A stretch of 64,000 nucleotides of DNA, taken from the sequence record NC_070950.1. One strand, given 5' to 3'. Below, piece after piece: positions 2 through 43,323 of this stretch. The position numbers were made by a program, and so were the translations under genes. Under the pieces are notes generated by a model. That model did no database searches, was not told the origin of the DNA, and saw only the letters and a list, made by a program, of their open reading frames with translations. Position 1 is the first letter of the stretch. Every line of letters begins with the position of its first letter.

Positions 2-1066
2 GCTTACTATCAGAAAGCTTGGACTTTGTTATGGGTGCCAGGGAAAGAGAGTATTATAGCTCCTATGCTGATCGTAGAGTGGATGGGTACGGGTTCTGAT
101 ACTAATGCTTATATCGGCGTGATGACGTTAAACGTGGTTAAAAACCCAACGCTGGCTGCTAACCAAACTACGACTGTGAATGGTGTAAAAACCTGCGTAA
201 TGAATGTAGGTGATTTGACAGTAGTCAACAAATATACTGTGACGAACGGAACCTATTCTGGTGATCGTTCTTGGTTTGATGCGATTGGTAACCACTACAT
301 CAACTCAGGATATTTTACTGTTTATCGCAATGCGTCTGGCGAAGTCTCTTTCTATTGGGGTTCTACCAATTCTAAGAACTACGGAAGCGCGACCAGTTAT
401 GGTGTTGCTAAAACGGCGTACCTGTCTGGTAAAATGTCGTCAGCAACCGTCATTTCCGCTATTAACAATTACCCTGGCGGAAGAGATATGTTGGGGTCTG
501 TCGTCTATGCATTAAAAGGCGTCGGTCTATTACTGATTTCCGATACGATGGCTACCGATATCTTTGTGGGTGGCGGCATTACTCCGGCTAAGCTGGCGGG
601 TAGTACCTACCAGTCAGTTCTGGATGGATATGCTAACACAGCGCTGTTAGGATCGTTCTACATCGTTGCCGACATCATCCCGGTCAATCAATGGACGTTG
701 TTCTTCTCAGCGAGTAAGATCGTTTTGAAAGGAACCTATTTCGAACTCCCCGTTGGTACTCTGACATTAACAGATTACTTCACCAATGTTCAAAATAAAA
801 CGTTCTACTTGTTTTTAAAACTCACTGAAGGTAGTCCTGTGTATGAACTGTCATCAACCATGTTGTCGGAAACTTCGACATGTATGTTGATAGCGACGGT
901 TACTACTGACGCCTTAAGCATTGTTTCTGTAGATACACAAAAGGTCTTTTCAATGACCGGCTATCGCGTGTCGTCTCAAGCTATCGGTTCGATCATACCT
1001 GGGTCGACCGGGGGGATCAACGAATTGGGCGAGACACCGTGGCTGTCGTCTACCTTGGTTGATTAA
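2..1066 (+). CDS. Virion tail/baseplate structural protein, 5'-truncated (phiKZ gp131-135-like paralog family)
   Basis: Frame is open from the window edge. C-terminal domain (FYLFLKL...MLIATVTTD..SI......GYRVS....GSIIP) is shared with the next two ORFs. Confidence 0.7.
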   Translation, partial: AYYQKAWTLLWVPGKESIIAPMLIVEWMGTGSDTNAYIGVMTLNVVKNPTLAANQTTTVNGVKTCVMNVGDLTVVNKYTVTNGTYSGDRSWFDAIGNHYINSGYFTVYRNASGEVSFYWGSTNSKNYGSATSYGVAKTAYLSGKMSSATVISAINNYPGGRDMLGSVVYALKGVGLLLISDTMATDIFVGGGITPAKLAGSTYQSVLDGYANTALLGSFYIVADIIPVNQWTLFFSASKIVLKGTYFELPVGTLTLTDYFTNVQNKTFYLFLKLTEGSPVYELSSTMLSETSTCMLIATVTTDALSIVSVDTQKVFSMTGYRVSSQAIGSIIPGSTGGINELGETPWLSSTLVD

Positions 1067-1114: not shown

Positions 1115-4100
1115 ATGTCTGACTTTAAAATCCTATCTTTCGATCCCAGAGGGGATAACGCAGATAATCTGTTAACCGAGCAGGTGACGTTGGATGACAC
1201 CACCCTCGATTACATTAAACCGGATTACAGTCCATTTTATTCTAACACTGTGGTTATTACTGATAAAGATGGTCAAGTGAGGAATGAAGGGACAGATTAT
1301 GTTCTGGAAGGTTTAGTCGTCCCACTGGTAAAAACTTCCGGTAAGGATGTAAAGGCTTACATCAGAATCGTCAATACAGAACTCTATGCTAAGTCTCCAC
1401 TGAGCATTCGGTATCATTCTTGCGGGATTAACCACTTTCCGAGAGATATGGTTAAGAACACTCCAACCGGGTCAGAAGGTAACAACCTCCCCGTCGATTG
1501 GAATACGCAAGTTTTAGGCAAGCCCGATTCTTATCCTTTTAAACCGCATATTCATAACGTTGAAACTGAAATAGCGGCGTGGACTGATTTGGCCGATGAA
1601 ATAGAAGAAATTTATCAGTACAGAAAAAATCACATCCTCAGCAAATACCAAGAGTTAAAAGGTCTGAGCGATGCAGTTTGGACTGCGACTGATCTCACCG
1701 CCAAGCAGCTCCGCGATAATGTGATGAATCACGATCGTGATCTCGATAACCCTCATGACGTTGATGCGGCTGACGTTTTACTCGGTAACGTAGACAACTT
1801 TGCTACAGCAACCGCCAATGACGAACTCCTGGGCTCGGCTGATAAGTTCTCTACCCCCCTAGGAGCGCAGTCTATACTTAATAATTCATTACAAAGTACG
1901 GACAGTTATCATCACATTGGTCGTCTTCCCCTTTCTTATTACGGAACTGATTTTTATATCCCCCCTCCGATAGAGGGAGACTTTAAAGGGATGTGGACTA
2001 ACTGTGAAACGGCCGGATTCTGTTTGGAAGATAACGGAACGTTAATGATGCTCGCCAATGCGTCTGACGGAAAGCACAACGGTCTGTTTTACACCACTAT
2101 TGAAAATTGGGATAGCACCAATCCAAAAGTCAGATATACCGGCTATCCTTACCAATGGGGGAATTTGGATTACCGTAAACTCAACGCCATTGTTGAAGGC
2201 TCTGGTAAAGACGTGATGATCGTAGGGAACCGTGTTTCTCAGGATTGGTACATTACTCTGACCAAAGGGACCTTCGACCCAGCGAAACACAATCTGCACA
2301 AAATCTCTTTCGATACCACCCCTCCTGGGATGTGGGACAATTATGTCGTTAACGAAAGATTCCCTTGGTTCGATATCAGCAAGGTTTTTGTTGCAGGGAA
2401 CTATGTTTGGCTGATGTATCTCAACCATCAGTATTTTAGCAATGAGTTGAGGATGGCTAAGGATCTTTATTTTTATCGCATCCCTTTATCAGCCTTTGAT
2501 ACTGACGGTCCGTTGGTATTCCAGGCGGTAACTCTGACAAGCGCGCATAACGTTTTCGGGACATTATTCTCTAACGTTAAACCGCTTAGAATGACGGATC
2601 CTGTTAAGAAGTCCAACGGGTATTATAACAATAGTTGGTGCAGAACTTCCCTGGATCTAACGTCTTCATTCCAGTGGATAAAATCAGTTATTATCCCGAC
2701 AGATTACGATACAACGTCTAACAAGAAGCTGATCTATTTAGAAACTAGAATGCATGACTATTATTATAATGGTTCTGTTTATAGTTTCTATTCTCCGGCC
2801 CTGCAGTTCATTTATATCTTTGATCCTGACAATAATACGTTTTTACTCCATCCTGATAGCGGAAGAAACTACCTAATTGATTTGGGGAATACCTCCAATA
2901 ATCCCCAGAGAGTAGAGGGAAGAATGGGTAATGGGGATGACTGGGTCAACATAGGTAGGAACCAAAGACCTAGTATCTACGCGATGAATGGCTATATTCT
3001 TAAGTCACAAATAAATCAGACTTACACCACCTTTAAATTAAAAACTGATTTACTCAGTTGGTTCAAAGACCCTTATTCGGGAGCAACGGGTGGGACTAAT
3101 GCTCTGACGGTAGTTAAAAAGTCTTATCCGATGGTAGAGCCCCCTGGCGCGGTTCAATCAAGCTATTTCGATGGCGCTGAAATATATGGAGTTTATGGTC
3201 CCCTTCCATCCAGCTCCACCAACGTCGCGACCAAAATGGGTTTATACCTCAGAACCGGATTGGGGGACTACGCCAATCACCCTGAGATGAGATGGGACAA
3301 CACTAATCTCATGATACGTCTGCCCAGCAACCAGGACTTTAAGATAGCGGGTGGTGGAAACTATGCAAGATGCAGTGTGACCGGTGATGCCGCAGCATTA
3401 ACCGCAGCAGGGACAACGATAGGGTGGACTGGATTCAGCGTTTATGAGGATAGGGGTGTTTTCGATAAATTCACCAACTGGCCCGCTCAGCCAAGTAATC
3501 AGGTTGCTTTACCCGGGAACATCACCTGGGATACAAGTGTTCCTGGAGTAGCGACAGCCCAGGTGAATTCTACAGTAAATTACCCAACCACCATTATCAA
3601 CCAGATTAAAGCGGTGTTGACTAATGGTATCGGGGCGACGAAATATTCGTCGTTTACACTTTACGATTTCACCTATTCCCCGTTTGCGGACGTCTATTCG
3701 GTAGCCACCCTTTTCTATACGAAGCCGGGATCTGCTGGACTGTGGACAAGGTTTATTTTGTTTAAACCTACGGTAACAACGTCCGGTACCGTAAAAACTG
3801 TGACCGCTTATTCCGTTCTGTACAACTCCGGTGAAGTGGTTAACGATGGTCCGAGGTTCTTCGCGAACATTGACATGAGCTATTCTAGAGGATTCGACAC
3901 TTATCCCATAGTGGAAGTCTATGTCAATCGAACCACCGGGATCCATTATTACAACATTTATCCGGGCGTTTGTTTCTATCCGGCAGGAAGTACTGGGGCG
4001 TACGCGGTTTCTTATATCGTACAGTCTCGTATACAGCTACAGCGGGCGACATCCAATAACGCGATTACTGTTACCGAAAACACAACAAGACCTACTTGGT

Positions 4101-4627
4101 ATAACGACGAATATTACGTTACCATGATTCCTAAGGTAGGGAGGGTCACTGTTTACGGCATTGATGTGCTAACTGAGATGGCGAATACTGGATCGATCGC
4201 AACAGTAAATGGAACGCGATATGTGACCGCTCACACTTATCCGGCGGATAACTGGTATGTGTATTTTACCAATGCGATTAACGTAACGATAGAAGGCGGC
4301 AGTTATCTCATGCCGACGGGCAGTATATCACTTTACGACATTGTAAGTAATCCCGTTGATAAGACGTTCTACGTTTATATCAGGTTGAACGGAACCAAAG
4401 CGGAATATTTCGTTACTACCAAAAAGCTTTACGTTTCTAGCAAAATGTTGTTTGTTGCAACGATAACGACTAACGATAAAGGGATCAGCAGCATCGATCT
4501 TCTCCAACCGATGATGGTGGGGGATTTGGTTCTCTCTAACGTACGTCGTGGTCAAGCAATTCCTGTTGTGGACGGGTCGCTGGGTCAAGAAGCAACTGTG
4601 GTATGGAAACGCAGCCAAGATAATTAA
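1115..4627 (+). CDS. Large virion tail/baseplate fibre-type protein (phiKZ-like)
   Basis: 1170 aa, Thr/Gly/Asn/Tyr-rich. H..D.DNPHDV.A.DVLLGNVDN fibre motif and the shared family C-terminal domain. Confidence 0.7.
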   Translation: MSDFKILSFDPRGDNADNLLTEQVTLDDTTLDYIKPDYSPFYSNTVVITDKDGQVRNEGTDYVLEGLVVPLVKTSGKDVKAYIRIVNTELYAKSPLSIRYHSCGINHFPRDMVKNTPTGSEGNNLPVDWNTQVLGKPDSYPFKPHIHNVETEIAAWTDLADEIEEIYQYRKNHILSKYQELKGLSDAVWTATDLTAKQLRDNVMNHDRDLDNPHDVDAADVLLGNVDNFATATANDELLGSADKFSTPLGAQSILNNSLQSTDSYHHIGRLPLSYYGTDFYIPPPIEGDFKGMWTNCETAGFCLEDNGTLMMLANASDGKHNGLFYTTIENWDSTNPKVRYTGYPYQWGNLDYRKLNAIVEGSGKDVMIVGNRVSQDWYITLTKGTFDPAKHNLHKISFDTTPPGMWDNYVVNERFPWFDISKVFVAGNYVWLMYLNHQYFSNELRMAKDLYFYRIPLSAFDTDGPLVFQAVTLTSAHNVFGTLFSNVKPLRMTDPVKKSNGYYNNSWCRTSLDLTSSFQWIKSVIIPTDYDTTSNKKLIYLETRMHDYYYNGSVYSFYSPALQFIYIFDPDNNTFLLHPDSGRNYLIDLGNTSNNPQRVEGRMGNGDDWVNIGRNQRPSIYAMNGYILKSQINQTYTTFKLKTDLLSWFKDPYSGATGGTNALTVVKKSYPMVEPPGAVQSSYFDGAEIYGVYGPLPSSSTNVATKMGLYLRTGLGDYANHPEMRWDNTNLMIRLPSNQDFKIAGGGNYARCSVTGDAAALTAAGTTIGWTGFSVYEDRGVFDKFTNWPAQPSNQVALPGNITWDTSVPGVATAQVNSTVNYPTTIINQIKAVLTNGIGATKYSSFTLYDFTYSPFADVYSVATLFYTKPGSAGLWTRFILFKPTVTTSGTVKTVTAYSVLYNSGEVVNDGPRFFANIDMSYSRGFDTYPIVEVYVNRTTGIHYYNIYPGVCFYPAGSTGAYAVSYIVQSRIQLQRATSNNAITVTENTTRPTWYNDEYYVTMIPKVGRVTVYGIDVLTEMANTGSIATVNGTRYVTAHTYPADNWYVYFTNAINVTIEGGSYLMPTGSISLYDIVSNPVDKTFYVYIRLNGTKAEYFVTTKKLYVSSKMLFVATITTNDKGISSIDLLQPMMVGDLVLSNVRRGQAIPVVDGSLGQEATVVWKRSQDN

Positions 4628-4672: not shown

Positions 4673-7600
4673 ATGATCATTTTAGATGAAACCATTCCTC
4701 CTAATGGTCAAGAGGATGAGCGCTTCGGTCTTTTACTTTACGCGTTAACCGACTACGGGATTAAAAGGGAGTTACAACACGTCGCCAGTGTGGCGGTGTT
4801 GACCGATAAAGTTGCCGAAGCGAATGCTAAGATGACATCGGTCAGCTCAGCGGTAAACGATGCTCTTGACGCCCACATTGCGACAAAAGGCCCCATCCAT
4901 GGGGAGACCAAGGAAACGATAGGTCTGGGTCTTGTTGACAATTTACGGACAGCCACGTTAGAAGAACATGTTGACGGTAGCGACGACCTGTTCTGTACTC
5001 CTGCTGGAGTAAAATACGCGGCTCAGTTTTTGGTTGAACCTGATTACACCGGGTTTATTCCACAGACTGTACTCCCTATTGCTTATTTCAAAAGACTGAC
5101 TGGGGATCTGAGCATTAACTCAATCTCTTTCAGTCCATGGACTCAGAGTAATAAGAAAGGTAACCTGTACATCACAGACGGTGCTTATTACGTCAGCTTG
5201 TTAAGTAAGAACGGCGGCGGGGTTAATTACCTGAGTGATCTTTTAACATCAAGGGATTTGATGTACTTCACACCTAGTGGCGGTACGATTGTACCTAAAC
5301 TGGCATACGGCTGGAACGCTAAGACGGGATACCAAACCCTGAGTGATGGTTCGAAACAGCTTACCTTTTTCGATTACACTCATAATGGCACTGGTGGGGA
5401 GTTCGCTCTTAATTTTTCGGGGTCTGTAACAGGCGACTATCTGTCGACCTTATTCGATCCTTTACTCGACACGTCTTCTTTAATAGGCGGGCTACGCTTA
5501 ACTCAGGCTGGATTAAATGTCACACTGACGACCATTACCCAGCCAGATGAGTCGGTCGCAACGCTACTGGTGGACAACACTACCGGTTTCAGTTTTAACG
5601 CCACGGGACCGAAGGGAACGGTTAGAACAGGGACGATTAATAACCTCATTCCTTTAGCCGACTTCATCACGGTAACTGACGCTACGGCGGTTACAATTGA
5701 CCCGACCTACACAGCCATTGACCAAACCCACGGCTATGGGAATATGGAATGGGAGGTTAAAGGGAAATCTGCGATTCTTTACACAGATGCTATCCTGAGG
5801 ACAACATTCCAAGGAGTCGTTAAGAAGATCGTCGCCAGAATAGCGTTAAGGTTGACGATAAGTGGGTCCACTTACACGATCGCTCCCTTATCTCAAGTGA
5901 GTATGGCGACGATAACTGCTGGCGCTGTTGCTGTATCCGGGAACATCCTTTTTGAAGAAGAAATTGATGGCGCTTTACACCCAGTTTACGGAAAAGGTCC
6001 GTTCTTAAGCGAGGGCGGGCACGCTACGTCAATGGCTTCCAACCAAAGCTTCTTCTTAAGGGCATTTACTCACGATCTAACCAGCCTCGTTGACCTGGCT
6101 AAAAACTATCACGAAACCCTTTCTCTCTCTGGAGAGTATACAAAGGAATATCCGGGTAGTTTTGCGGCTCCGATAGGGGTGAACATTAAACGCTTCATAC
6201 CGTTTAATAGTACCGCTTCGGGGTTAAAGGTTTTAACCTATCCGATGGCCAATACCTCAGAAGACTACTACGGGGTATTAAGTTGGGATAGTCCTCAGAT
6301 TCTCCAGTCGTCTAAGAACAAGCCGCTGTATTATCGGTTCAAGCAGGCGAGCTCTTTAACCAACTTTACATTAAGCTCCACCATACCGACCAGGCTGATT
6401 GTTAACTCCGGTGCTGATGGCAGCGTTACTGTGAGGGGGTTGAGTTTCTTACGCAGTGATTATACCGCCGGTACGGGTAAACTGGTCATTACGGAGAATG
6501 AGGTTAAAGCGTCTGAAACTTGGGCGTTGGACGCCGACTCCATTACCACAATGGAATCTATCTTGTCGACGTTCTCCACCAGAAGCCACACAGCGTATAC
6601 TTCTGCTGGGGTGGCGTACGACGCAAGTAAACAGTCAATGAGTTGGTCTGTTGGGATTTTGACGACCTCTGACGACATTACCGCAGTAACAAGATGTGTT
6701 GTGTTATTATCGGATGGTTGCGGTTATGTGGGGTGTCAAATCGTTCCTACGACGCCTAATAGCGGAACAAGAACGTTTACCATCAACAGAGCGTCATTGG
6801 GCACACTGACATCCATGACTTTTGGGATGGCTGCTGTTCCTGATTTTAGTGCGGCCGAATATCTGACACCGCCGGCGTACAACGACATAATGGTATTAAC
6901 TCGTTCCGATAATTCGTTAGAGATCGCATTTAATAACGCGTTTAAAACGAAATACGGGATGGCGTCATTCTTATATTCCGGAACAACGCTGGCACTGGAT
7001 AAAATAGAAAATCCAAGAGTCAGTGTAGGGAATTTCCCCATCATCGGGAAACGTGGGTGTTGCCCTATCAGTATTCCTTACTACGGTATTTTCAGGATGA
7101 CGGATAACGAGGAGGAGTTTTTCAACGCCAACCTCAATCGTTATCTTAACCAGTATGGCGATTTAACGGACGACGTAGTCACTATGGGGGGTTCGGATTA
7201 TCACCTAATCAGAATCCCTGCCGGGACCAAAGTGTTCTTGGATGGTCGAGAATTCCAAATGATCTCCGGTTTAGTCGTCTACGCTCAGGTAGGAGTGACG
7301 TCGTATATTTATCTCACAGCGGCGGCCGATAACGTGATGGCCGAGGCCAGAACCGTAAAATCAGAACCTGCCGTTGATGAAATCATTTACGCAGTAATGG
7401 ATGAAGCAGGGAATCTCGTTATCAACGACACGTACACTGTCATTGATGGGTTCGCGGTATCCTACACTCGTCAGGGTAGTTCTATCCCGTATACTACGGG
7501 TTACCCTATGGATCTTGGCGAAACACTCTTCTTTAAAACAACCTTCGGGGATCCTGATCTTGATGTAATCATGAACTCAACCATGCCAGAGTTTGGCGGG

Positions 7601-7888
7601 ATGGAGTACATGCCTGACCTTGATGAGGAGATCAACGACATTATTCCTTCTTGGGATAATCTCGAAGATCAAGCCATGGACCTCATGATGAACCAGATTC
7701 TCCCAGAGGATATTGGAACATTGGAGGAAAATATCGATGAGTGCATCAACGAAATTCAACCTGAGTACGTCGAAGACTACAGAGATTCCAACGACATCAT
7801 TGTTAACCAATTGATGCCGGAAATCGGTATGTCTCGATTTGTATTGACGGATTATATCGTTAACCAGATCTTACCTGATTCGGAATAA
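4673..7888 (+). CDS. Large virion tail/baseplate protein paralog with an acidic repeat extension
   Basis: 1071 aa. H....GPIHGETKETIGLGLVDN motif and family C-terminal domain, followed by 113 extra acidic residues. Confidence 0.7.
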   Translation: MIILDETIPPNGQEDERFGLLLYALTDYGIKRELQHVASVAVLTDKVAEANAKMTSVSSAVNDALDAHIATKGPIHGETKETIGLGLVDNLRTATLEEHVDGSDDLFCTPAGVKYAAQFLVEPDYTGFIPQTVLPIAYFKRLTGDLSINSISFSPWTQSNKKGNLYITDGAYYVSLLSKNGGGVNYLSDLLTSRDLMYFTPSGGTIVPKLAYGWNAKTGYQTLSDGSKQLTFFDYTHNGTGGEFALNFSGSVTGDYLSTLFDPLLDTSSLIGGLRLTQAGLNVTLTTITQPDESVATLLVDNTTGFSFNATGPKGTVRTGTINNLIPLADFITVTDATAVTIDPTYTAIDQTHGYGNMEWEVKGKSAILYTDAILRTTFQGVVKKIVARIALRLTISGSTYTIAPLSQVSMATITAGAVAVSGNILFEEEIDGALHPVYGKGPFLSEGGHATSMASNQSFFLRAFTHDLTSLVDLAKNYHETLSLSGEYTKEYPGSFAAPIGVNIKRFIPFNSTASGLKVLTYPMANTSEDYYGVLSWDSPQILQSSKNKPLYYRFKQASSLTNFTLSSTIPTRLIVNSGADGSVTVRGLSFLRSDYTAGTGKLVITENEVKASETWALDADSITTMESILSTFSTRSHTAYTSAGVAYDASKQSMSWSVGILTTSDDITAVTRCVVLLSDGCGYVGCQIVPTTPNSGTRTFTINRASLGTLTSMTFGMAAVPDFSAAEYLTPPAYNDIMVLTRSDNSLEIAFNNAFKTKYGMASFLYSGTTLALDKIENPRVSVGNFPIIGKRGCCPISIPYYGIFRMTDNEEEFFNANLNRYLNQYGDLTDDVVTMGGSDYHLIRIPAGTKVFLDGREFQMISGLVVYAQVGVTSYIYLTAAADNVMAEARTVKSEPAVDEIIYAVMDEAGNLVINDTYTVIDGFAVSYTRQGSSIPYTTGYPMDLGETLFFKTTFGDPDLDVIMNSTMPEFGGMEYMPDLDEEINDIIPSWDNLEDQAMDLMMNQILPEDIGTLEENIDECINEIQPEYVEDYRDSNDIIVNQLMPEIGMSRFVLTDYIVNQILPDSE
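7547..7885 (+). repeat. Six protein-level tandem repeats, D-x3-N-x3-P, period 19-20 aa
   Basis: LDVIMNSTMPE / LDEEINDIIPS / MDLMMNQILPE / IDECINEIQPE / NDIIVNQLMPE / TDYIVNQILPD. Confidence 0.85.
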
Positions 7889-29070: not shown

Positions 29071-30708
29071 ATGACCACACCAACCAAATTACCGATTCCC
29101 AGCAATAACTTGCTGGATTCGAGATTTAACTTTGAGAAGTTAGACCAGATAGTTAATTCCGATGCCAATTATTATACCGATAGATTCGGTAAGAAAAGAT
29201 TTACTTTTAATGGAATATATCTCGCTTTAAAAGGATACTTTGATACTTTAAAATCAAATTTATCTTCAGACGAAGGATATAAAGAAATAGGCGGGTTTTT
29301 TAGTGCTGAGGGACCGGAACAGATAGGCTATCAAAAATATTCCATTTTTGATAGAGTTTTCAAAAGAGGGATGTATGAAATTGATCAAGGGCCTGGAGAT
29401 CCAAAAGGAATTGCCGGAATAACATTTGGTGGGGAAAATAATAAAGGGACGATCCTACTGGATGAAAGAGGGCGTATTCAAACCTATTCCGTAAAAGAAA
29501 ATGTTATTACCGCCGCAAGGGTAGCCATTCCCTATGGAGAACTCTTTGGTCAAGGACCTAATGCCAGTAACTACGACGGGCACATCGTCCATTTCCCTTT
29601 TCCAGGAGGAGAAGACGACAGCCTACATTCGTCTTTAGTTTTTATTCCAAACCAATTAGGCGGTTCTGACGTATGGGTGCGGGGACCGGGGGCGTACGGA
29701 AATTACGACGTTCCTTATCCTAATGCTAAAAAAGTGATGTCTAAACTCGCCAAAGTTAATGATCTTCCACCGGCTATATTAAAATCGAGTACCAACTATA
29801 GCAGCTTTGTTAGCTCGGTAAGTTGGAGCCTGCTTTTTGTTTTAAGAACCGATACTGTTGGACCTATTTTTACCGGTGTTTATATTTCTGGAAACGTTCT
29901 TAGTAATGCGGTATATAGTTATCTCATAGAGGTTAACAATGTCGGAACTTTAGCCCCAACTACAGCGACAGCTAAAGATGTGATGAGGGTGACTTGTCTT
30001 AGGGACCGAGGCGACGCCCAGTGGAGTACCGATAACCAGACTAAATTCGGTTACGTTTACGATAGTGCTAATAACACGCTTTCTTTTTATGCTAAAGATG
30101 CGATACGCAGCGATAACGCGACCTTTATTCCTTGGCGTTACACCGATCAAAATAGTGCAGGTGTTTTAGGCGTAGATGTTAAACAACCTAATAACACTTA
30201 TGTTAGCGTGGAGCCCACTGGAATTGTTTATTTAGATGTCAACGACGCATTAACGAACAACACTTATGTGGATCTAAATGATGGGACTGTCGTAAAGACC
30301 ACCGGTGCAGTGATAAGACTCACTAATGGCATTACTTCAAGCACCAAAACACCCATCACGGGATTATTCAAAAAGAACGATGATTATTGCGCTATTAACC
30401 GAGGATATTCCGGGTTAAATATTGTAACGGCAACGAAATTATCTACGGGAACCTATCAAATTACTGGGGCGACAACTAATAAGACGGGTATAGGGTGGAA
30501 ACTCAAATCCCCGGTTTTTTCTGGTGGGAGCGGGATTCAAAATATAGTTGGGAACATAGTTTCTGATACGGGAACTGTGATTACAATCGAAGTAAGACAA
30601 GTGGTCTACACACTTAATACTACGACTAATGCGATCACCCAATCTCTTGGTGATTTGATTGATATTCCTGCTGATTCATGGGTTGATATCCACACGTCAT
30701 TGAGGTAA
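29071..30708 (+). CDS. Tail fibre / receptor-binding protein with the shared N-terminal module
   Basis: MTTPT..IPS..D..FN.EKLD..VNSD..YTDRFG..R.T module. C-terminal KLSTGTY.I.G...GDLIDIPADSWVDI resembles enterobacterial prophage tail-fibre ends. Confidence 0.8.
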   Translation: MTTPTKLPIPSNNLLDSRFNFEKLDQIVNSDANYYTDRFGKKRFTFNGIYLALKGYFDTLKSNLSSDEGYKEIGGFFSAEGPEQIGYQKYSIFDRVFKRGMYEIDQGPGDPKGIAGITFGGENNKGTILLDERGRIQTYSVKENVITAARVAIPYGELFGQGPNASNYDGHIVHFPFPGGEDDSLHSSLVFIPNQLGGSDVWVRGPGAYGNYDVPYPNAKKVMSKLAKVNDLPPAILKSSTNYSSFVSSVSWSLLFVLRTDTVGPIFTGVYISGNVLSNAVYSYLIEVNNVGTLAPTTATAKDVMRVTCLRDRGDAQWSTDNQTKFGYVYDSANNTLSFYAKDAIRSDNATFIPWRYTDQNSAGVLGVDVKQPNNTYVSVEPTGIVYLDVNDALTNNTYVDLNDGTVVKTTGAVIRLTNGITSSTKTPITGLFKKNDDYCAINRGYSGLNIVTATKLSTGTYQITGATTNKTGIGWKLKSPVFSGGSGIQNIVGNIVSDTGTVITIEVRQVVYTLNTTTNAITQSLGDLIDIPADSWVDIHTSLR

Positions 30709-30711
30709 ATA

Positions 30712-32391: not shown

Positions 32392-32399
32392 TCTAACAA

Positions 32400-32432
32400 T
32401 TACTACTGGTCGGTATTTCCGACCAGTAGTAA
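32400..32432. terminator. Intrinsic terminator
   Basis: 14-bp stem TTACTACTGGTCGG / CCGACCAGTAGTAA. Confidence 0.8.
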
Positions 32433-32512
32433 CCTTCTCGATTTTATGCTGATCTAAATTCAGTAGACTTGCGCAAGTCTTTACAATTTATTTATTCATA
32501 AGGAGTAACCTC

Positions 32513-34627
32513 GTGGCTACAACTCCAACTACGGGTGATATCCCCAGCAATGCTGCGGTGGACCTCAAGTTTAACTCGGAACAATTCGACCGAGTGATGA
32601 ATTCTGACGATCTGACTTATACAGATCGGTTTGGTAAAAAACGCATTACGATGAAAGGTGTACAAGAACTAGCTAACGGGTTCCAGGATACTTTCACTAA
32701 TCTGCTGGGTTCTCCTGACGGGTTCAAATTAATCGGCGGAGTTAAATCTTTTGATACTTTAAGATCGACCCCGGTGAAAACGGAAGGCCAGCGTATTTTT
32801 CTTAAGTCTTATTATGAAAACGGCTCTACCGGCGGTGGTATTTTTATTGGTCATATCGGCACTAAGTTAGATGACGGCGGTACTGTTGCCCAGGGCGTGG
32901 GCTTTTATTGGGAAAGGGTTGGGTCAGAAATAAAACTCGCCGATTACGGGATTTACCAGCAAAATATTTCCGTGGGAACCCCCGTCGACATGTCCGGATT
33001 ATTGCAGAGTGCAATAAATCAAGCGATTTCTCGCAAAACCCATATCGTTACAGGCATGGGAAACGAAAACCATTATATAAAATCAGGGATTTATATAAAA
33101 AATGGGATTACCATAACAGGACTCAAAGGGATCACGGGTCCGCTCCCATTATTTCTAGACTCATCTGTTTTCTCAGGAATAACAGCGCCTGGGTACAGTG
33201 TTCCATGGGCCCTAACTAACCTTAACGCCACGTACGACGCTACAGGAATGATCTTCGGGACATCGATAGGAAACCAGTTAATCGATTCAATAACGATAAG
33301 AGATATTAACTCAAGACATTCCAAATTGGGCGGGCAGCTTCATACATTTAGCGGAACGGTAATTAGAGGGGCTTTATGTTCAACTGGTTTCGACGGGCCA
33401 GGGGTTTACTTGTCGAGCTGTTATGATTCGTCAATTCTTGATGTCCGGGCCATCAGTTGCGGTAACACGTCTTATTGGGGTGTTTCTTTCGAGAGTTATC
33501 CGGCATCAACAGCGTCAACATTGGATACTTCCAATCACTTAACCGTTGGGTCTGTTGAAGTTCACGATTGTTACGACAAATGTTTAAACCTGAATGCTTC
33601 TTCAAGCATGATATCTCATATCCATGAAGAGGCTTCTTACGTCACCGACACCACTACTTGGTCTTCGGCGACGGTCTCGACTAATGGATTTGGATGGACC
33701 AACACCATTCTTTCCGGAGCCTGGTCCGTTTATGGAACAGTTAGAATTCTTCCTACTTCTTCTACTGACAGTAATCACGTAACGACGATCGTTTCTGATC
33801 AGCTAGAAATAGGGTCGATTAACACCACGGGTAATGTCAGTCTCCATTTCTCGTACACGACCGTAAAAAGGGGAATCTCCATAGGTACGGCGGATATAGC
33901 AAAGAATCTCTATGTTACTTCCGATGTTCCTGGAGAAATAGGTTACTGTCAATTGATAGGCGATGCGTCCGTAGCCACCATCTTATCTAACTCATTAAAT
34001 TTTGAATATCTTAATATTCCTGGATCTTCCGGATCGGTTAGTTCCGCCGGAGGCGTGTTTGGAAAGGTCGTGTGTAAAACGGCCAGTTTTAGTTCTTCCG
34101 TAATTCATAAAGGGTCATTTACGACATTGAATTTGTTAGGTAAAACTTACGTTAGGGATGTTGGGGCGGCAGCACTGGTCGTTTCAGGAGGAAAAAATAA
34201 AATAGAGGATTCCTATATTTCTGGGAATGCAACTTTAGACGGCGGCGGAACAATATTTAACACGGACATAGCCGGACCCGCATCCTTTACTGGATCGTGG
34301 GCGTCGAGAATGAATAGAGTTAATGGAAATTACTCTATTGGATCTTCCTCAGCTGAGACGTACGCGTCAGAACATAGTAACATTTTCGTAAACGGTCAGC
34401 TTTCAATCAATGGATACGCTAAAGCATCGTTAGAAAAAATGACCGTGGGTAACATCTACTTCAATGTTACTGGCGGATGGTGTACTTTAGAAAAAATAAA
34501 GATGGCCGGGGCTTTAAGTGGAAACCCAATAAGCGCAACAAATATTCCTGGGTACGGGTCGGTAACAACCAATCCTTCTACCGGGGCGATCTATGTTTAT
34601 AAATCCACAGGATGGACGGAATTATAA
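32513..34627 (+). CDS. Tailspike / putative depolymerase with the shared N-terminal module
   Basis: GTG start after AAGGAG. N-module, then tailspike neck motif (IFLKSYYE..STGGG.F...DDGGT...G.YWER), then D.S.LLQSAIN.A beta-helix cap. Confidence 0.85.
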   Translation: MATTPTTGDIPSNAAVDLKFNSEQFDRVMNSDDLTYTDRFGKKRITMKGVQELANGFQDTFTNLLGSPDGFKLIGGVKSFDTLRSTPVKTEGQRIFLKSYYENGSTGGGIFIGHIGTKLDDGGTVAQGVGFYWERVGSEIKLADYGIYQQNISVGTPVDMSGLLQSAINQAISRKTHIVTGMGNENHYIKSGIYIKNGITITGLKGITGPLPLFLDSSVFSGITAPGYSVPWALTNLNATYDATGMIFGTSIGNQLIDSITIRDINSRHSKLGGQLHTFSGTVIRGALCSTGFDGPGVYLSSCYDSSILDVRAISCGNTSYWGVSFESYPASTASTLDTSNHLTVGSVEVHDCYDKCLNLNASSSMISHIHEEASYVTDTTTWSSATVSTNGFGWTNTILSGAWSVYGTVRILPTSSTDSNHVTTIVSDQLEIGSINTTGNVSLHFSYTTVKRGISIGTADIAKNLYVTSDVPGEIGYCQLIGDASVATILSNSLNFEYLNIPGSSGSVSSAGGVFGKVVCKTASFSSSVIHKGSFTTLNLLGKTYVRDVGAAALVVSGGKNKIEDSYISGNATLDGGGTIFNTDIAGPASFTGSWASRMNRVNGNYSIGSSSAETYASEHSNIFVNGQLSINGYAKASLEKMTVGNIYFNVTGGWCTLEKIKMAGALSGNPISATNIPGYGSVTTNPSTGAIYVYKSTGWTEL

Positions 34628-34643
34628 ATTTAAAATCAATCTT

Positions 34644-34669
34644 ATTTCCCTGACGGACGTCAGGGAAAT
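34644..34669. terminator. Hairpin, probable terminator
   Basis: ATTTCCCTGACG-GA-CGTCAGGGAAAT. Confidence 0.65.
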
Positions 34670-34692
34670 GGCTATTAAAGAAAGGCTAGAAC

Positions 34693-37600
34693 ATGACCAC
34701 GCCAACCGATAAAGATATACCGAGTAACTCGGTACAAGATAGACTGTATAACGCCGAGAAATTTGATGAGTTTATGAACTCGGATAATGTCAATTACACT
34801 GACCGTAAAGGAAAAAGCAGATGGACATTATCGGGTATTAGACAAGCCGTCCAAAATTGGATGGATACTCTGAAAACCAGTTCAGGGGCTTCAGCTATCG
34901 GCTACGGTACGAGCACAGTCGCCGATGAAATCGCTAAGACGGTCAAGCAGCAGATCACTTTCTCAACCGGCGGCACACTGAATACACCGTTAGATCGTAT
35001 AAGTGACGGAACGTATTTGTATTACTGGACCGGTGTATTCCCGAAACAAATCCCGGCGAATTCAACAATTGATTCAACCGGCGGCATGGGAGTTGGTGCG
35101 TGGGCCGCGGATACCGATTCATTATTGAGAAAAAAATTATCAGATGAGGGCGGTTCTCAGCTTATTTTCGGGTTAGGAAACATAATCGGGACAGTCGTCG
35201 AGATCCTGAATTCCACAGAATCCCCCCAGATATATCAGGCAAATGGGTTTTATGCGCAGAATGACGGCGGCGAAGGCGTTTGGGTAGCGACGGGGAATAC
35301 CTCTCCTGAATTATCAGGTAAACACGTGCCATCAAGCGCGGCGGTATACAACGCAAATGGCGTCGAATATCAACTGAAAGTACAATCTGGATTTGAATTA
35401 TCAGCAAAAGCTAACGGATCTAAGCCAGTCAGCAATGTCGATGCTCAAACCGAAGATTTCGTATGTCTTGGTGAAGTAGTGAACGGTATCACGTCGCGTG
35501 TCAAAACTATGAGCAATGACGACGATTTTTGGACGTACCTAAAAGTCACCATACCGTCCGAGACCCCATTACGTATCGGGAAAAGCAGTATCAAGGCTTA
35601 TTCGCGCTTGACGTTAGATTTTCAGCAGGCTTCAATTTACGTCAGGCCGAGCCCGTCAAAACGCCAGGAAGTCACCGGCGTTTATATGAACGCCATCGAG
35701 CGCGGTATTGAAGATATCAAGGCGATATCCGCAAAGTATGCCGGTAAGACGTCTTACTTTAATATGACCGTTTCGAATTTTCACATCATCGGTGGGAAGT
35801 TCTTCGGCGACCATAACACTGATAAGGGGGTTGCGAATTGCAGTACCGGCACTGGATTGCTCACTTACAATTTAGAAGAGTCCAGCGTCACTAATACGTG
35901 GTTCCAGGGATTTGCTTGTGGGCGTCAATACGTCCGCACCGTGTCCGGTTATTATTTCGATAACCTTGGGCGCAAAATAACGGGCACGCTGGTTCCAGAA
36001 GTTGCTTCTTCAGCCACTGGTTCTTATGAGGGCGTTAAGGAATGGTCCGTCACGGCTTATGGCTGCCGTTACATGTACCTGAGAACTGTCAGTAACTGGG
36101 CGAGATTCGAGAACTGCAAATTCGGTACCTACGCTGACTGGGGGTCAAGCCCTGATGGCAACCAGTGCGAATACTTCATTGAGAACCGAGGAGCCGGTGT
36201 AGTATTCAGTGGCGGTGTGATTGAAGCCAATACCTCGGCCGCCAACCCAACAAAAGGCTTTGTGAGGGACTTCGCCCGCGGGTGTACGTTCACAGGTATC
36301 TACTACGAGAACTGCCTGTCGGCTGGGTGGGTCATCACCACTCCTGAAAAGAGCCAGTACAACCGAGCTAATGGACTGTTCCTTACAGCTATTGGGAGTC
36401 AGTATACTGGATCGTCGAAGGGCGCCCCCCTGGTTAAATTTGAACCGGGATACTTTGGCTCATACGACGCTACTACGGGGCTGTATAAAACAGGTGGTTG
36501 GGAAACAAATTACCAGTATTCGGGTGGGGTTAACACCTGGTCTGTAGGTCAACCTGTTTTAGATTCCGGGGCTTTCCCTCACGGTGGGTATGACTTTAAA
36601 TATGGGACTTACGGGATCCATTATTCTGGAGCTGCGCCGGATGTAGACTCGCTTCGGGACACCCCTGAAGGTAATGAGTTTCTGTCTCAATATGGATTAC
36701 TGGTTAACTCCGGAGTTTTGTTATTCCCTGAATTATCCCCGGCATATCACTCTAACATCGTAGTTTGGTATAAAGACCTGACGGGTAACTTTGACCCAAG
36801 GGGTATTGTTGTTGGTGATTTCGACAATAACAACGTGTCTGATGGGACCAGCAATGCGCTCTACCGTACTAATGGGTTTAATTACTATGACTACGGTAAT
36901 GGGTATAAGGCGGCCATTGTGCCCTACGTTAACCCGCGCCCACTCGATAACAGGATGACAACGTCTGCCGGACGCAAGTTAAAAATTACTGTAACCAGTG
37001 ACGCTCCTATTATCCTGAAAAGCATTCAGGCGTTCGTAGGGGGGACTCCGATATTCCCGCCAGCCGTTAAGGAATATGTGCCTCGTTCACAACGAGACCG
37101 CATATGGGGTACTATGACTGGTGCCTCTACGAATTCTGGTGCGTATTACGGTCCACTGATTGGCGGCGGTATCTTCCGACCAGGTGATGTAGTGTTACCT
37201 TTTACGCCGTTCCAGAACCCCTTGTTGCTGGATCCGCTAACGTACACAGATATTTCCGGGACCTTTGGCTCGAGCGCAGAAATCGTTACTATTACCGGTG
37301 GTGCGACCTGGGGAGCTGGATTATCCGGTAAAACCATCGCCCTTACAGTAGTAGACCAAGACGCAACCCATGGCTGGACAACCGTCTCGGTACCGTCTGA
37401 CAGTTTGGCATACATCTTAACCGGGATGCCGGTTAACATAACGGCAAACTCCTCCGGGGGGGGTACAGGGTTTATAAATATTGTACGCAGGATTATTAAT
37501 TCCGATGGGACTCTGAGCAATAATTACGTGTTGTCCGGTACCCTTGGGGCCCCTGGTACGACCCTAACAGCGTCAACAAACGGGAGTTATACATTGCGCT

Positions 37601-38334: not shown

Positions 38335-38473
38335 TTAATAACTCACAATTGATGTGGGGACCGGTGACGAGTGATAGAATCTGTAAGAGGTGACATCGTT
38401 ACAGATTTTTTGTTACCGCACCGGTCGATGTTATGAAAGGATCATGGTTTTATCACACACAGCAGGTACTTAT

Positions 38474-39247: not shown

Positions 39248-39252
39248 GTTCT

Positions 39253-39289
39253 AATAACTCCTACTCCCGATAAGGGAGTAGGAGTTATT
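39253..39289. terminator. Terminator of the repeated CTCCTACTCCC hairpin family
   Basis: 16-bp stem AATAACTCCTACTCCC-GATAA-GGGAGTAGGAGTTATT. Confidence 0.85.
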
Positions 39290-39337
39290 TTAAACGCACC
39301 ACGACCATTTATGAACTTTTCATAAGAGACTGTAATC

Positions 39338-39805: not shown

Positions 39806-39917
39806 TTTTAACGACCATAATGTTTTATTGGTAATAAACGAGAATACGTTGTTTTAAACATCGGTTTGAAATAACACGTTCTCATTTTAAACAATAAATA
39901 AAAAGGTAATAGCCGTT

Positions 39918-40706: not shown

Positions 40707-40712
40707 TAAAGT

Positions 40713-40748: not shown

Positions 40749-40752
40749 TTGT

Positions 40753-43323
40753 TTAACTTACATAAATGGAAGTTAACGATAGCTGGGAGAATATCCCTGA
40801 AATGTACGCCTGAACACCTCGCGTCCCTACGGTGTAGCGATCAATAAAACTATTCATTTGGGTCGAACTAGTTCCTGAATAGTCAGTCCCTGAAACCGAC
40901 ACGGAGGTTGTTCCCGATAGAGTATTGACTGAACTGGTAATATTAGTGGCGATGGATCTCGCCAAAATACCACTTCCGGGATAGTCAATTTTAAAAACAT
41001 CAAAAAAGGTATTACCGGATTGCAAATGGGTGGCCTGCAGACAATTTCCTTTGGCCACATATAAAGCCCCGGACCAACTACTATTATTTACTCCGGTGTT
41101 CCAGATCATCAGAGAAGAAATTGGCGTACCTGAGTTATTATAATAGGAGCAGTCACTTAACCGGAACCATTGGGCTAAATTCAAATTAGATGATGTGACC
41201 GAACTTAACGAGTAGTCGCCGGAAAAACTTACCCCTGACGCTTTCAGTCTGTGAAGGAACGCCGAATCGGCGGTCGTTAAAGGCAAATTAGTCCCTGATT
41301 TGACACTCCCTCCCCTCATGTTAATTTCTACACGTTGATTGGCTTCCTGGGTGCCGTCGTTGGTAATGAACCTTGATAACTCACAGTCGTTGAAATTATA
41401 GGACCCCCTTTGTGAGATTCTCACTAGGGTGGGGGTGCCGTTGTAATTGGGGTTGTGTAATCTCCTAGCGTCGAGCCTAATATTGTGTTGAAATCCGTAA
41501 GATGGACGTTTGATAATTAAATTATCCACCCCTACGTTGTTCATACTGACTTTCATGTCGATAGGTTCGAACATAGTGTCGGTCGATGCAGAAGTATTGC
41601 TTGCCCTGGGCTTCGTGTTGGTGAAATCAATTTTTAACGTCCCGCCGGCGGCGTAGGTAACGTTGTCAAATCGAATATTCATAGGAGGGGTAACCGTTCT
41701 GTCGCGGTTTATCCAATAAATATTTTGAAGGCAACTAGAAGCTTCCGGAGTCTCAATAGTCAAGCCGTCAATATCTATTTTATTAAATAGCTCCCCAGCC
41801 ATCTGAGACCCAGTAGGTAAAGAAGTGTAATTATCGGCGGCTCCCTGTACAATGGACCCTTCTCCATTGGACGCTAAACTGTAATATTTCCAAAATCCTC
41901 TGACCCTGACGTTACGCATAATCAGCGTCCCATCGGTGATTCCTCCGGAAGTAGTCCTGGCCTGCACAAGTGAAGGGAAAAGAAATTTTCCGTAGTAAGG
42001 GTCTCCGGATCCCCTCCCCAGTTCGTATACTGTGTCAAGTATCTCGAGAGTTGAGTTTTTAGTACCTAAGAAAACAGCAGCTCCGTCACCAATCTTGCAG
42101 TTTACAAGTTTGTAATATCCGATGCTTGGGTTATGACTATCGAAGTTGTTGGCCGAGCAATTATCAAAAATGGTATCGGCTATCCAACCGGCCGCGGATA
42201 TCGACCCCCATCCGTAGCCAAACGCGTTTACGTTTCTTACGTATAACTTCGCCCCCCACCCATGGTGGAGTGTGTAAGATGCATAAATGGTCGTTTGATC
42301 CGAGGAAGAAAAGGAAGCGGTTGGGTGAGCGTCGTAGATGAAATCCACGTAGGTGTTGTAGTAATACTGAATGTCGATAACGTGACGTGATCCTATTTCC
42401 GTAATCGGTTTATTGAGTATTCTCCCCTCTTTTATGATCAAGTTGGACACATAAAAGAACTGGAAGAATATAGGTCTAGGTCCATAACGATAGTCGACGT
42501 CCGGCATAATAAATTCACTGAAACCAGCCTGGATAGGTAGCGCCGATATGCTAGTAATCGACGTCCCGTTGTAAGGGAAGACGTTATCCATTTTGCCGTT
42601 AGCGCTTATCCTGGTTACGTGAGCGAGTTTCTGAGTTTTTGCGCCAGCTTGGGTTTGTGTGCTATTATAAACATATAGGTCGTCTGAAAAATTCATAATG
42701 ACCATGCTGTCGTTTAAAGTCGTGTCCGATCCCAACGAATCTAAACAACCGTTTCCGCTTAAGAAGTCTGTGGAGGCATTAGCATTTAACTTAGTTACCA
42801 CGGAAGATCCGGAGGCATGGTTAACTAATCCGCTCGATTGAGAGATCCAGAAAGTCCCGGTAAAATCAGCCGCCGGAATAATTTTCATTCCCCCTAAATC
42901 GGTCTTCTTATTATCGATGATCCAGTTAAACTTGGCGTTACCGGAAATCAAGTACTCACCAGATTTTTGTTTTATAGGAATGCCCGTCAATGTCGACAAT
43001 TGAATAAGGGCTAAAAGTTTGTCGGTGACGTCAACATCCCCCGTGTTCTCTATACCAAACATGTCACAGGAAAGAAATGTTTGAAGGTTAGAGACTTTAC
43101 CTCCATAAGGAAGATTTATAATTGACGACCCGTCCCCTCCGGTTAAAACATTCAGGGTTTCCTGGACGGCCGCCGCTACCCCCTTAGCGGTCAATCTCTG
43201 GTTACCAAAACGATCAGTATAGGTATTCTCATCGGAATTAATGATCTCATCTAACTTTTCGGCATTAAATCTAACATCTATAGCGGTGCTACTGGGTATA
43301 CCATTTTGTGTTGGAGTCGTCAT
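40753..43323 (-). CDS. Tailspike / putative depolymerase with the shared N-terminal module
   Basis: MTTPTQNGIPS..D.RFNAEKLDEIINSD..YTDRFG module, then DMFGI..TG.VD.TD cap and a beta-helix-like body. Confidence 0.85.
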   Translation of the reverse strand: MTTPTQNGIPSSTAIDVRFNAEKLDEIINSDENTYTDRFGNQRLTAKGVAAAVQETLNVLTGGDGSSIINLPYGGKVSNLQTFLSCDMFGIENTGDVDVTDKLLALIQLSTLTGIPIKQKSGEYLISGNAKFNWIIDNKKTDLGGMKIIPAADFTGTFWISQSSGLVNHASGSSVVTKLNANASTDFLSGNGCLDSLGSDTTLNDSMVIMNFSDDLYVYNSTQTQAGAKTQKLAHVTRISANGKMDNVFPYNGTSITSISALPIQAGFSEFIMPDVDYRYGPRPIFFQFFYVSNLIIKEGRILNKPITEIGSRHVIDIQYYYNTYVDFIYDAHPTASFSSSDQTTIYASYTLHHGWGAKLYVRNVNAFGYGWGSISAAGWIADTIFDNCSANNFDSHNPSIGYYKLVNCKIGDGAAVFLGTKNSTLEILDTVYELGRGSGDPYYGKFLFPSLVQARTTSGGITDGTLIMRNVRVRGFWKYYSLASNGEGSIVQGAADNYTSLPTGSQMAGELFNKIDIDGLTIETPEASSCLQNIYWINRDRTVTPPMNIRFDNVTYAAGGTLKIDFTNTKPRASNTSASTDTMFEPIDMKVSMNNVGVDNLIIKRPSYGFQHNIRLDARRLHNPNYNGTPTLVRISQRGSYNFNDCELSRFITNDGTQEANQRVEINMRGGSVKSGTNLPLTTADSAFLHRLKASGVSFSGDYSLSSVTSSNLNLAQWFRLSDCSYYNNSGTPISSLMIWNTGVNNSSWSGALYVAKGNCLQATHLQSGNTFFDVFKIDYPGSGILARSIATNITSSVNTLSGTTSVSVSGTDYSGTSSTQMNSFIDRYTVGTRGVQAYISGIFSQLSLTSIYVS

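Follow-up and report, generated by a model that had tools for sequence, protein, structure and literature searches.

The window analysed here is a stretch of 64,000 nucleotides from sequence record NC_070950.1. The open reading frame at positions 4673-7888 on the plus strand encodes gp058 of Klebsiella phage Miami (1071 aa by translation; 100% match to MT701590 66673-69888), the third of three paralogous baseplate/tail-fibre proteins, and it ends in an acidic repeat tail. The locus contains the following features:

26..1066, plus strand: 3' part of the gene for paralog gp056, truncated at the window edge; lacks the tail
1115..4627, plus strand: paralog gp057; without the tail
4673..7888, plus strand: gp058 gene, with its stop codon at 7886-7888
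4685..5083, plus strand: conserved N-terminal region of gp058 (residues 5-137), by tblastn and low nucleotide diversity
7220..7552, plus strand: C-terminal domain of gp058 common to gp056 (residues 850-960; BLASTP against gp056 residues 1086-1204, E 2e-4)
7547..7885, plus strand: acidic repeat tail of gp058 (residues 959-1071), the proposed six-slot adaptor array
7562..7588, plus strand: core of unit 1, D964 to P972
7622..7648, plus strand: core of unit 2, D984 to P992
7679..7705, plus strand: core of unit 3, D1003 to P1011
7736..7762, plus strand: core of unit 4, D1022 to P1030, with E-Y after it, a feature of most distal-tail-protein adaptors
7793..7819, plus strand: core of unit 5, D1041 to P1049
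7850..7876, plus strand: core of unit 6, D1060 to P1068, without a counterpart in the relative P0002
7893..7928, no strand assigned: terminator hairpin with a 16-bp stem, flanked by the convergent genes gp058 and gp059

PHROG 14667/3573, tblastn and synteny place these proteins among the baseplate fibre paralogs of phiKZ/EL-like phages (EL ORF114-116, Joad gp99-101), and the gene order beside a baseplate protein is conserved between gp058 and both of these sets. EL ORF116 and Joad/RisingSun gp101 share the gene position and the protein body of gp058, with 23% identity over residues 15-955. Judged by these alignments and by synteny, the carrier of the tail is a fibre protein of the EL ORF116 type. 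However, EL ORF116 (956 aa) ends approximately where the gp058 tail begins, Joad gp101 continues at that point into an extension of some 150 aa that is beta-rich and unrelated, and neither contains the repeat. Residues 5-137 are the only part of gp058 covered by tblastn matches to many phiKZ/EL-like jumbo phages and are likely the virion-attachment end.

The 113-residue tail contains six D-x3-N-x3-P motifs, which start at residues 964, 984, 1003, 1022, 1041 and 1060 (DNA positions 7562, 7622, 7679, 7736, 7793 and 7850). Their Asn residues are 968, 988, 1007, 1026, 1045 and 1064, giving spacings of 20, 19, 19, 19 and 19, and the protein ends three residues past the Pro of unit 6, as most distal tail proteins do past theirs. 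Not one of 200,000 shuffles of the 117-aa tail contained six motifs, the maximum being three. The segment of residues 955-1071 has 30 D+E versus 3 K+R and a net charge of -27. At the DNA level the units have diverged (mean column identity 48%), Tandem Repeats Finder detected nothing in the tail DNA, and the pN/pS of the tail is 0.08; the tail is kept at the protein level. Across the Miami genome, the pattern D..[MIVL]N...P is found six times in gp058 and otherwise only as two singletons, and the motif array is unique to gp058 within this genome.

An earlier note had described this acidic extension and its regular repeats from the letters alone, had read the pattern as maintained at the protein level over diverged DNA, and had stated that the two upstream paralogs stop right after the shared domain. 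All three statements hold. The last 119 residues of gp056 align to gp058 residues 850-960 (E 2e-4) and gp056 ends there, while gp057 and gp056 can be aligned over nearly their whole length, leaving only a few residues at either end. The direct C-terminal match between gp057 and gp058 is not significant on its own.

The same note had offered a cleaved propeptide and an assembly scaffold as alternatives to docking; both have lost ground without being ruled out. As a C-terminal propeptide or intramolecular chaperone, the tail would aid folding or assembly of the fibre and then be removed. C-terminal chaperone domains are common among phage fibres, one of them, Peptidase_S74, occurs in this window in tailspike gp095, and the gp058 tail follows the domain where the paralogs end. 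However, a Pfam scan of gp056-058 returned no family match, Peptidase_S74 included, although the same kind of scan detects S74 in gp095. The paralogs that share the C-terminal domain fold without the tail, the periodic composition with its strong net charge is unlike that of known chaperone domains, and a PDB sequence search with gp058, gp057 and the tail found no relative. We consider removal as a propeptide very improbable. Readings of the units as EF-hand, dockerin, LRR or beta-spiral/beta-solenoid were also rejected, on the misfit of pattern and periodicity and on the same Pfam and PDB sequence searches.

Structure prediction offers only limited guidance. AlphaFold2 gave an unusable model for full-length gp058 from a two-sequence alignment (pLDDT 29.6) and an only suggestive one for the tail alone (pLDDT 53). 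In the latter, low-confidence model, five helices of 8-17 residues are predicted, each with Pro near its start and Asn near its end. The helical hydrophobic moment of the tail is modestly above that of shuffles (z 2.3), and the beta-type moment is not (z -0.3, -1.2). These data could fit a purely structural helical-repeat extension, namely a Pro-punctuated rod, segmented coiled coil or solenoid whose role is to lengthen, trimerise or position the fibre without docking anything, with D, N and P acting as helix caps. Between Miami and the relative P0002, conservation in the linkers is about the same as in the motif cores, as expected within a folded domain. On the other hand, the tail model has low confidence, and gp056, gp057 and the EL and Joad orthologues manage without the tail.

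To analyze the distribution of the tail, 1.84e9 representative proteins were considered, among which it occurs in only two clusters at 50%. Its holders are the Miami-like phages and one 45%-identical relative, P0002, with five units. A word-indexed search of proteins yielded just one further cluster, the near-identical P0017, and no relatives of gp058 were found in IMG/VR. The P0002 contig ends directly after the tail gene; contigs reached via gp098 homologues were considered as a source of spikes of the P0002 lineage and discarded, as they are at the level of the Miami genus. The tail-bearing phages are reported on Klebsiella, Raoultella and Stenotrophomonas.

Within the gp058 gene, the tail has the lowest nucleotide diversity (0.021 versus 0.057). 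A conserved antisense gene was rejected as the cause, since the antisense open frame is not kept. The low diversity and pN/pS fit a conserved partner within the virion rather than a variable host receptor. This bears on a third alternative, in which the tail is a host-facing fibre tip whose periodic Asp and Asn bind a component of the cell surface, or else divalent cations that form bridges to LPS or capsule. The C-terminal end of a fibre protein is normally distal, the different globular addition at the same place in the Joad orthologue suggests a specificity module, and Asp and Asn are, as general knowledge, frequent Ca2+ ligands. However, variation usually peaks in receptor-binding tips whereas the tail is the least variable part of its gene, the units match neither EF-hand, dockerin nor LRR patterns nor any Pfam family, and an acidic capsule would repel an acidic tail. 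A role at the host surface therefore seems very unlikely to us.

The candidate partners within the virion are tailspikes that share an N-terminal module (N-module). Those in the window are:

29071..29235, plus strand: class A N-module of the spike-like protein gp092, a proposed partner (60% identical to the Sf11 gp13 N-terminus)
32513..32680, plus strand: class C N-module of tailspike gp094
34693..34857, plus strand: class D N-module of gp095, a tailspike that continues with Tail_spike_N and a Peptidase_S74 chaperone domain
43159..43323, minus strand: class E N-module of tailspike gp099

All six N-module classes of the Miami-like phages (A, B1, B2, C, D and E) align to residues 1-60 of gp13, the tailspike of Shigella siphophage Sf11, with 48-60% identity (pairwise E 1e-18 to 1e-21), and a search of gp095 against the PDB matched 9occ_G (E 7e-15). 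On this alignment evidence, the N-module and the N-terminal helices of gp13 are homologous. The gene order of the classes is kept while the spike bodies are swapped. Both gp095 and gp054 contain the Tail_spike_N (TSP1/gp66) head domain. The net charge of the N-modules is near neutral (+3 to -3), and the idea that they complement the acidic tail electrostatically failed.

The tail of Sf11 has been solved (PDB 9OCC). According to the report of that structure, residues 4-59 of three gp13 chains form a helical bundle with a single helical adaptor from gp17, the distal tail protein, such that the acidic adaptor helix is clamped by the gp13 N-terminal helices; the named contacts are Glu129, Glu136, Glu147 and Glu152 to Arg16/Lys19 (PMC12724387). 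The gp17 adaptor helix ends in D146-EVV-N150-REL-P154, the same motif as in the gp058 units, and two of these reported contacts, Glu147 and Glu152, fall within residues 146-154. The 156-aa distal tail protein of KpV2811 likewise has D-EIV-N-RDW-P-EYP at its C-terminus. Of 78 translated distal-tail-protein homologues, 68 have the motif, and most of these stop three residues past the Pro. When the 36-aa adaptor segment is shuffled, 1.3% of the shuffles contain the strict motif by chance; requiring the hydrophobic position lowers this to 0.4%, and adding the acid that follows lowers it to 0.1%.

Profile comparisons did not show homology. A profile of 11 Miami and P0002 units ranked the KpV2811 distal-tail-protein C-terminus first among 866 six-frame fragments of that phage's genome, but with E-values of only 0.54 and 2.5. 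In the reverse direction, a profile of distal-tail-protein adaptors did not rank gp058 with its best matches in the window, and BLAST with the distal tail protein against the window did not find the gp058 tail. We therefore claim no homology between the gp058 tail and the distal-tail-protein adaptor; as far as these comparisons go, the likeness is at the motif level only. Of the Glu positions that contact Lys19, the equivalent at D+1 is acidic in two of the six gp058 units and that at N+2 in none, and the Lys19 equivalent is basic in three of the six N-module classes.

The correspondence with the Sf11-type adaptor can thus be set out as follows. In both systems, spikes with exchanged enzymatic bodies keep a common anchor, the partner N-modules are homologous by alignment to the gp13 N-terminus, and the receiving element, putative in gp058, is an acidic C-terminal segment with D-x2-h-N-x3-P at its end, after which E-Y and the protein's terminus often come. 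The carriers differ: in Sf11 it is a siphovirus distal tail protein (Dit), which gp058 is not, and no distal-tail-protein homologue was found in the Miami/YC1 composite genome. Sf11 has one adaptor per distal-tail-protein chain and six per tail, whereas Miami has six diverged tandem copies on a myovirus fibre paralog.

The earlier note had named a tail in relatives lacking N-module spikes as the case that would refute docking. No such case was found: each of the seven tail-bearing phage records has 4-9 N-module spikes. Moreover, exactly these seven records have two or more N-module spikes, and they account for 45 of 250 places, while each of the other 205 records has one. Since the holders are one genus and one relative, this co-occurrence amounts to about one evolutionary event. 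'Vibrio' and 'Acinetobacter' N-module phages could not be counted as independent lineages, their distal tail proteins being near-identical. The number of repeats does not follow the number of tailspikes, as six units stand against 4, 7 or 9 spikes per phage.

We can now return to the structural extension. The lack of demonstrated profile homology to the adaptor is in its favour, but it would leave unexplained both the co-occurrence with multi-spike arrays and the presence of the same motif in the structurally defined spike adaptor of phages with the N-module. A role in fibre architecture alone remains possible, though unlikely.

Together, these data support the idea, put forward in the earlier note, of a Pro-capped helix per unit with the N-module as its partner, because the N-module has its homologue in the N-terminal helices of Sf11 gp13, which dock on one acidic helix, the D-x3-N-x3-P adaptor end is shared, and no record has the tail without spikes. 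All of these tests are indirect, though they point the same way, and binding is inferred. We propose, as the reading we favour with some reserve, that the tail is a hub with several slots, each unit docking one spike trimer; the helicity of the Miami units, their binding to the N-modules and the stoichiometry are inferred, and there are no binding data.

In this mechanistic model of docking, the tail would consist of six adaptor helices for tailspikes, arranged in tandem. Every unit of 19 residues may form a short acidic amphipathic helix with Pro at its end, and the three N-terminal helices of one spike trimer would wrap around it to form a four-helix bundle, as in Sf11. Such an array on the end of a baseplate fibre would allow a jumbo myovirus without a distal tail protein to carry several capsule depolymerases, which could be interchangeable because the N-module is kept while the enzymatic bodies swap. 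Since the same motif holds the tailspike in a small unrelated phage, the gp058 tail is probably a rack for interchangeable capsule-degrading spikes, again in the absence of binding data.

It is tempting to speculate further that the diverged units act as addresses, one for each positional N-module class (A, B1, B2, C, D and E), giving an ordered array with up to six depolymerase kinds per fibre chain. Both the units and the N-module classes vary at positions that are in mutual contact in Sf11. A pairing of six classes with six units is not robust, as the class count shifts with the clustering cut-off (8, 6, 5, 4 or 3), and we regard such addressing as doubtful. If true, the five-unit relative P0002 would be expected to have one class fewer.

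Other multi-spike phages use different means. In the two-RBP Klebsiella podophages KP32, K11 and KP34, a folded branching domain of RBP1 receives one peptide of RBP2 (PMC6872550, PMC13352976). There, too, a short conserved N-terminal element hangs the second RBP on the first and permits modular exchange of depolymerases, but the receiving side in Miami would consist of short repeated helices with several slots per chain, and no sequence relation between the gp058 system and this docking was found. The tailspikes of CBA120, G7C and RaK2, which likewise form a branched multi-spike adsorption apparatus on a myovirus, branch through T4 gp10-like/XD domains, folded domains inside the spikes (PMC10253068). 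Within the sensitivity of Pfam HMMs, no gp10-like/XD domain was detected in gp056-058 or, Tail_spike_N aside, in the spikes scanned. A further analogy, from general knowledge, is the cellulosomal scaffoldin, whose tandem cohesins, folded domains of about 140 aa, are slots for enzymes that share a docking module. Both would present a row of similar slots for interchangeable enzymes on one polypeptide; however, the gp058 slot would be a 19-residue helix, and there is no relation in sequence or fold. An addressable array, if it exists, would correspond in phages to a scaffoldin whose cohesin-dockerin pairs are specific.

To our knowledge, the attachment of depolymerases in jumbo or multi-spike Klebsiella phages is known solely for folded branching domains. 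The docking element suggested here is much smaller, an acidic helix of 19 residues around a D-x3-N-x3-P core; its motif is common to small siphoviruses, with one copy per distal tail protein, and to a nucleus-forming jumbo myovirus, with six in tandem on a fibre. The analysis also brings out, within the Sf11 adaptor, a conserved core motif to which the available part of PMC12724387 does not draw attention, and it marks the gp058 C-terminus as a precise spot to inspect in virion maps; for the sister phages, no virion proteomics or maps were found in the literature. If true, the model would account for how a phiKZ/EL-like lineage acquired the spike system of unrelated phages, and for the constancy of the N-modules against the turnover of the spike bodies.

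The ORF at window 4673-7888 (+) is 100% identical to positions 66673-69888 of MT701590, the record of Klebsiella phage Miami, a 253-kb jumbo myovirus (Miamivirus), in which the gene CPT_Miami_058 (gp058) is annotated as 'hypothetical protein'. In a 2026 survey, Miami is assigned to Chimalliviridae and is predicted to have six receptor-binding proteins, in what is called a 'branched multi-fiber arrangement' (PMC13709898). The 1071-residue product carries six D-x3-N-x3-P motifs in its C-terminal tail (residues 959-1071), starting at residues 964, 984, 1003, 1022, 1041 and 1060, with Asn-to-Asn spacings of 20, 19, 19, 19 and 19. The last 117 residues contain 30 acidic against 3 basic residues. 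Shuffling the tail 200,000 times never produced six motifs; the best shuffle had three. Aligned as DNA, the six 19-residue units average just 48% identity per column, and Tandem Repeats Finder reported no repeat there, which supports the claim of the earlier note that the pattern is maintained at the protein level.

That note had also stated that the two upstream paralogs lack the extension, and alignment confirms this: gp058 residues 850-960 align with gp056 residues 1086-1204 (E 2e-4), gp056 stops exactly where the gp058 tail starts, and gp057 stops at the equivalent point of its alignment with gp056. The tail could be a cleaved propeptide, but it shows no signature of S74 or any other chaperone and the paralogs manage without one. 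EL ORF112-117 and Joad gp97-102 have the same gene order as Miami gp053-gp059, and the gp058 body matches Joad/RisingSun gp101 (over residues 15-955) and EL ORF116 (over residues 1-939). EL ORF116 (956 aa; comparison stretch L005:9001-11871) has no C-terminal extension and gp101 of Erwinia phage Joad (L004:11805-12255) has an unrelated, beta-rich one of ~150 aa, which makes the fibre C-terminus a site for adding lineage-specific modules.

An exhaustive phmmer search of 1.84 billion representative proteins with the tail hit two clusters only, its own and that of P0002, a metagenomic orthologue of 1064 aa with 45% identity to gp058 over the whole protein and 52% within the tail. In P0002, five units retain D, N and P with the spacing seen in gp058, and the sixth is missing. 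A 90%-cluster search added a single, near-identical cluster. The exhaustive search thus shows that the tandem array is restricted to one small lineage. The gp058 gene occurs in six more phage records at 92.6-96.7% nucleotide identity. In the 'Stenotrophomonas phage BUCTxx100' (OR529409.1; L017, L106), gp058 is ~95% identical to that of the Klebsiella phages and the N-module spike array is of the same kind; for so close a relative, its host label looks surprising.

All six units are intact in the six Miami-like phages compared, and only five tail positions vary. Across these phages, pN/pS is 0.084 for the tail against 0.049 for the body, and no other 117-codon window of the gene is as low in nucleotide diversity as the tail (0.021 versus a body mean of 0.057); the N-terminal window comes next. 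No antisense frame has been conserved. A host-facing or ion-binding tip would agree with the position of the tail, but it conflicts with this conservation, as no part of the gene varies less in phages reported on three host genera. The variable middle and conserved ends of gp058 fit protein-protein contacts within the virion, not a tip that determines host range.

The spike proteins gp092, gp094, gp095 and gp099 in the window start with a common module of ~55 residues (N-module). In gp095 it is followed by Tail_spike_N and, at the end, a Peptidase_S74 chaperone domain. Just upstream of the window, gp054 (L001:1633-4404) is a fusion: residues 1-244 have 42% identity to the entire 245-aa Joad gp98, and Tail_spike_N and a GH28 depolymerase domain come after them, so that this spike is anchored through an ancestral fibre protein and not an N-module. 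The N-module protein gp092 has no recognisable depolymerase domain, and gp093 (window 30712-32391, 559 aa, RaK2 gp525-like), which has no N-module, begins 4 nt past the gp092 stop; the two may be a working pair.

By position, the N-modules group into classes A, B1, B2, C and D on one strand and E on the other, with gene order kept and spike bodies differing; clustering gives 8 down to 3 classes depending on the cut-off. Comparison of window 29071-43323 with the corresponding stretches of related phages (L007, L009, L011, L013, L014, L106-L108) reveals a highly mosaic cluster within the genus, in which flanks are 84-97% identical and spike bodies are replaced. In KPN8_74 (L007:9854-12085), an in-frame class B1 N-module runs from L007 9854, upstream of the annotated start, which is probably too late. 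VB_ZK_P1 gene 144 (L107:23165-23521) is a 118-aa ORF with hardly anything beyond a class D N-module: what is left of a spike, or else an N-module standing alone, which could fill a slot.

By tblastn, N-modules occur at 250 places in 212 phage records. Seven Miami-like records hold 45 of the 250 (4, 4, 7, 9, 7, 7 and 7 per record), and every other record, mostly from siphoviruses of ~47 kb, holds one. Multi-copy arrays are thus confined to the tail-bearing Miami-like records, although this co-occurrence amounts to about one event because all lie within one genus. The comparison of repeat number with tailspike count proposed with the multi-slot docking hub of the earlier note gave no tracking: six-unit tails accompany four spikes in Miami, seven in four phages and nine in KPN8.

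A structural precedent exists in the Shigella siphophage Sf11. The gp095 N-terminus matches its tailspike gp13 (PDB 9occ chain G; E 7e-15), residues 1-60 of which are 48-60% identical to all six N-module classes. According to a 2025 report, the N-terminal helices (residues 4-59) of three gp13 chains bundle with one helical adaptor region, contributed by the distal tail protein gp17; Lys19 forms salt bridges with Glu136, Glu147 and Glu152, and Arg16 with Glu129 (PMC12724387). Translation of gp17 from the Sf11 genome revealed that the adaptor ends in D146-EVV-N150-REL-P154, a D-x3-N-x3-P motif within which Glu147 and Glu152 fall. Klebsiella phage KpV2811 has a distal tail protein of 156 aa with the same C-terminal motif, then E-Y-P.

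We collected 80 distal-tail-protein homologues from IMG/VR, of which 78 could be translated. The motif stands at the adaptor position in 68 of the 78; one has Leu for Pro, and nine, a clade at 60-62% identity (L091-L099, siphovirus contigs), have Thr for Asn (D-IIV-T-ETL-P). N-module spikes persist beside this clade, implying that Asn is dispensable there, and such a spike lies in the flank of 76 of the 80 loci. Most homologues, likewise gp058, end three residues past the Pro. Within this family (L020:6881-8254; L021; L110:8347-9717), most distal tail proteins have 156-159 aa and end right past the motif; those of Sf11 and a few others have 456-457 aa, with an extra C-terminal domain beyond it.

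No distal-tail-protein homologue was found in the composite genome of Miami and its relative YC1. A scan of that whole genome (open frames of at least 80 aa, 154,395 residues) for D..[MIVL]N...P returned the six matches in gp058 and, elsewhere, two singletons, a number close to chance expectation. The only other in-gene match, near residue 486 of the 2268-aa annotated endolysin WNY41030 of YC1 (L105:17372-24178; residue 495 of an open frame beginning 27 nt upstream), is probably due to chance. If N-modules dock as in Sf11, the gp058 tail would be the only candidate receiver found.

The Sf11 adaptor is carried by a distal tail protein, whereas gp058 is not one. When the 36-residue adaptor segment is shuffled with its composition preserved, the strict motif arises in 1.3% of cases, falling to 0.4% with the hydrophobic position common to all 11 Miami/P0002 units, and to 0.1% with an acid after Pro as well. 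Against the whole KpV2811 genome, cut into 866 six-frame fragments, a profile of the 11 units ranked the distal-tail-protein C-terminus first, with an E of only 0.54; in the Sf11 stretch it ranked it second (E 2.5). The reverse profile (26 distinct adaptor 19-mers) did not place gp058 among its top matches in the window, nor did BLAST detect it. What is alike is therefore a short motif together with its setting, namely an acidic putative helix in a C-terminal tail of phages with a common N-module. The tail would work like the Sf11 adaptor, but homology to it has not been shown, as the profile test failed; common descent and convergence cannot be told apart. There are also points of tension with Sf11-like docking: the Glu contact positions are only partly retained in the gp058 units, and N-modules are near neutral overall. 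At the position equivalent to Lys19, classes A, C and E have a basic residue and B1 and B2 a hydrophobic one, while in D the basic residue is displaced by one position.

The full-length gp058 model was unusable (pLDDT 29.6). That of the tail alone, of low confidence (pLDDT 53), has five helices of 8-17 residues, four of which start within three residues of a Pro, and all end within a few residues of a motif Asn. The helical hydrophobic moment modestly exceeds that of shuffles (z 2.3) and the beta-type moment does not; unit helicity remains an inference. A purely structural helical extension would fit this model and the evenly conserved linkers, but leaves unexplained both the motif match to the adaptor and the co-occurrence of tail and multi-spike array.

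We propose a docking model. Each gp058 unit would offer one amphipathic acidic helix, to be clamped by the three N-terminal helices of one spike trimer, and six units would provide up to six slots per chain. The repeat, its conservation and lineage restriction, the homology of the N-modules and the occurrence of the motif in the adaptor of known structure are all demonstrated, but binding, occupancy and any differences in preference among the units are inferred. The principle of spike N-terminal helices docking around one adaptor helix is already known from a siphovirus, in work published in 2025. We found no description in the searchable literature of such units set in tandem on the fibre paralog of a myovirus.
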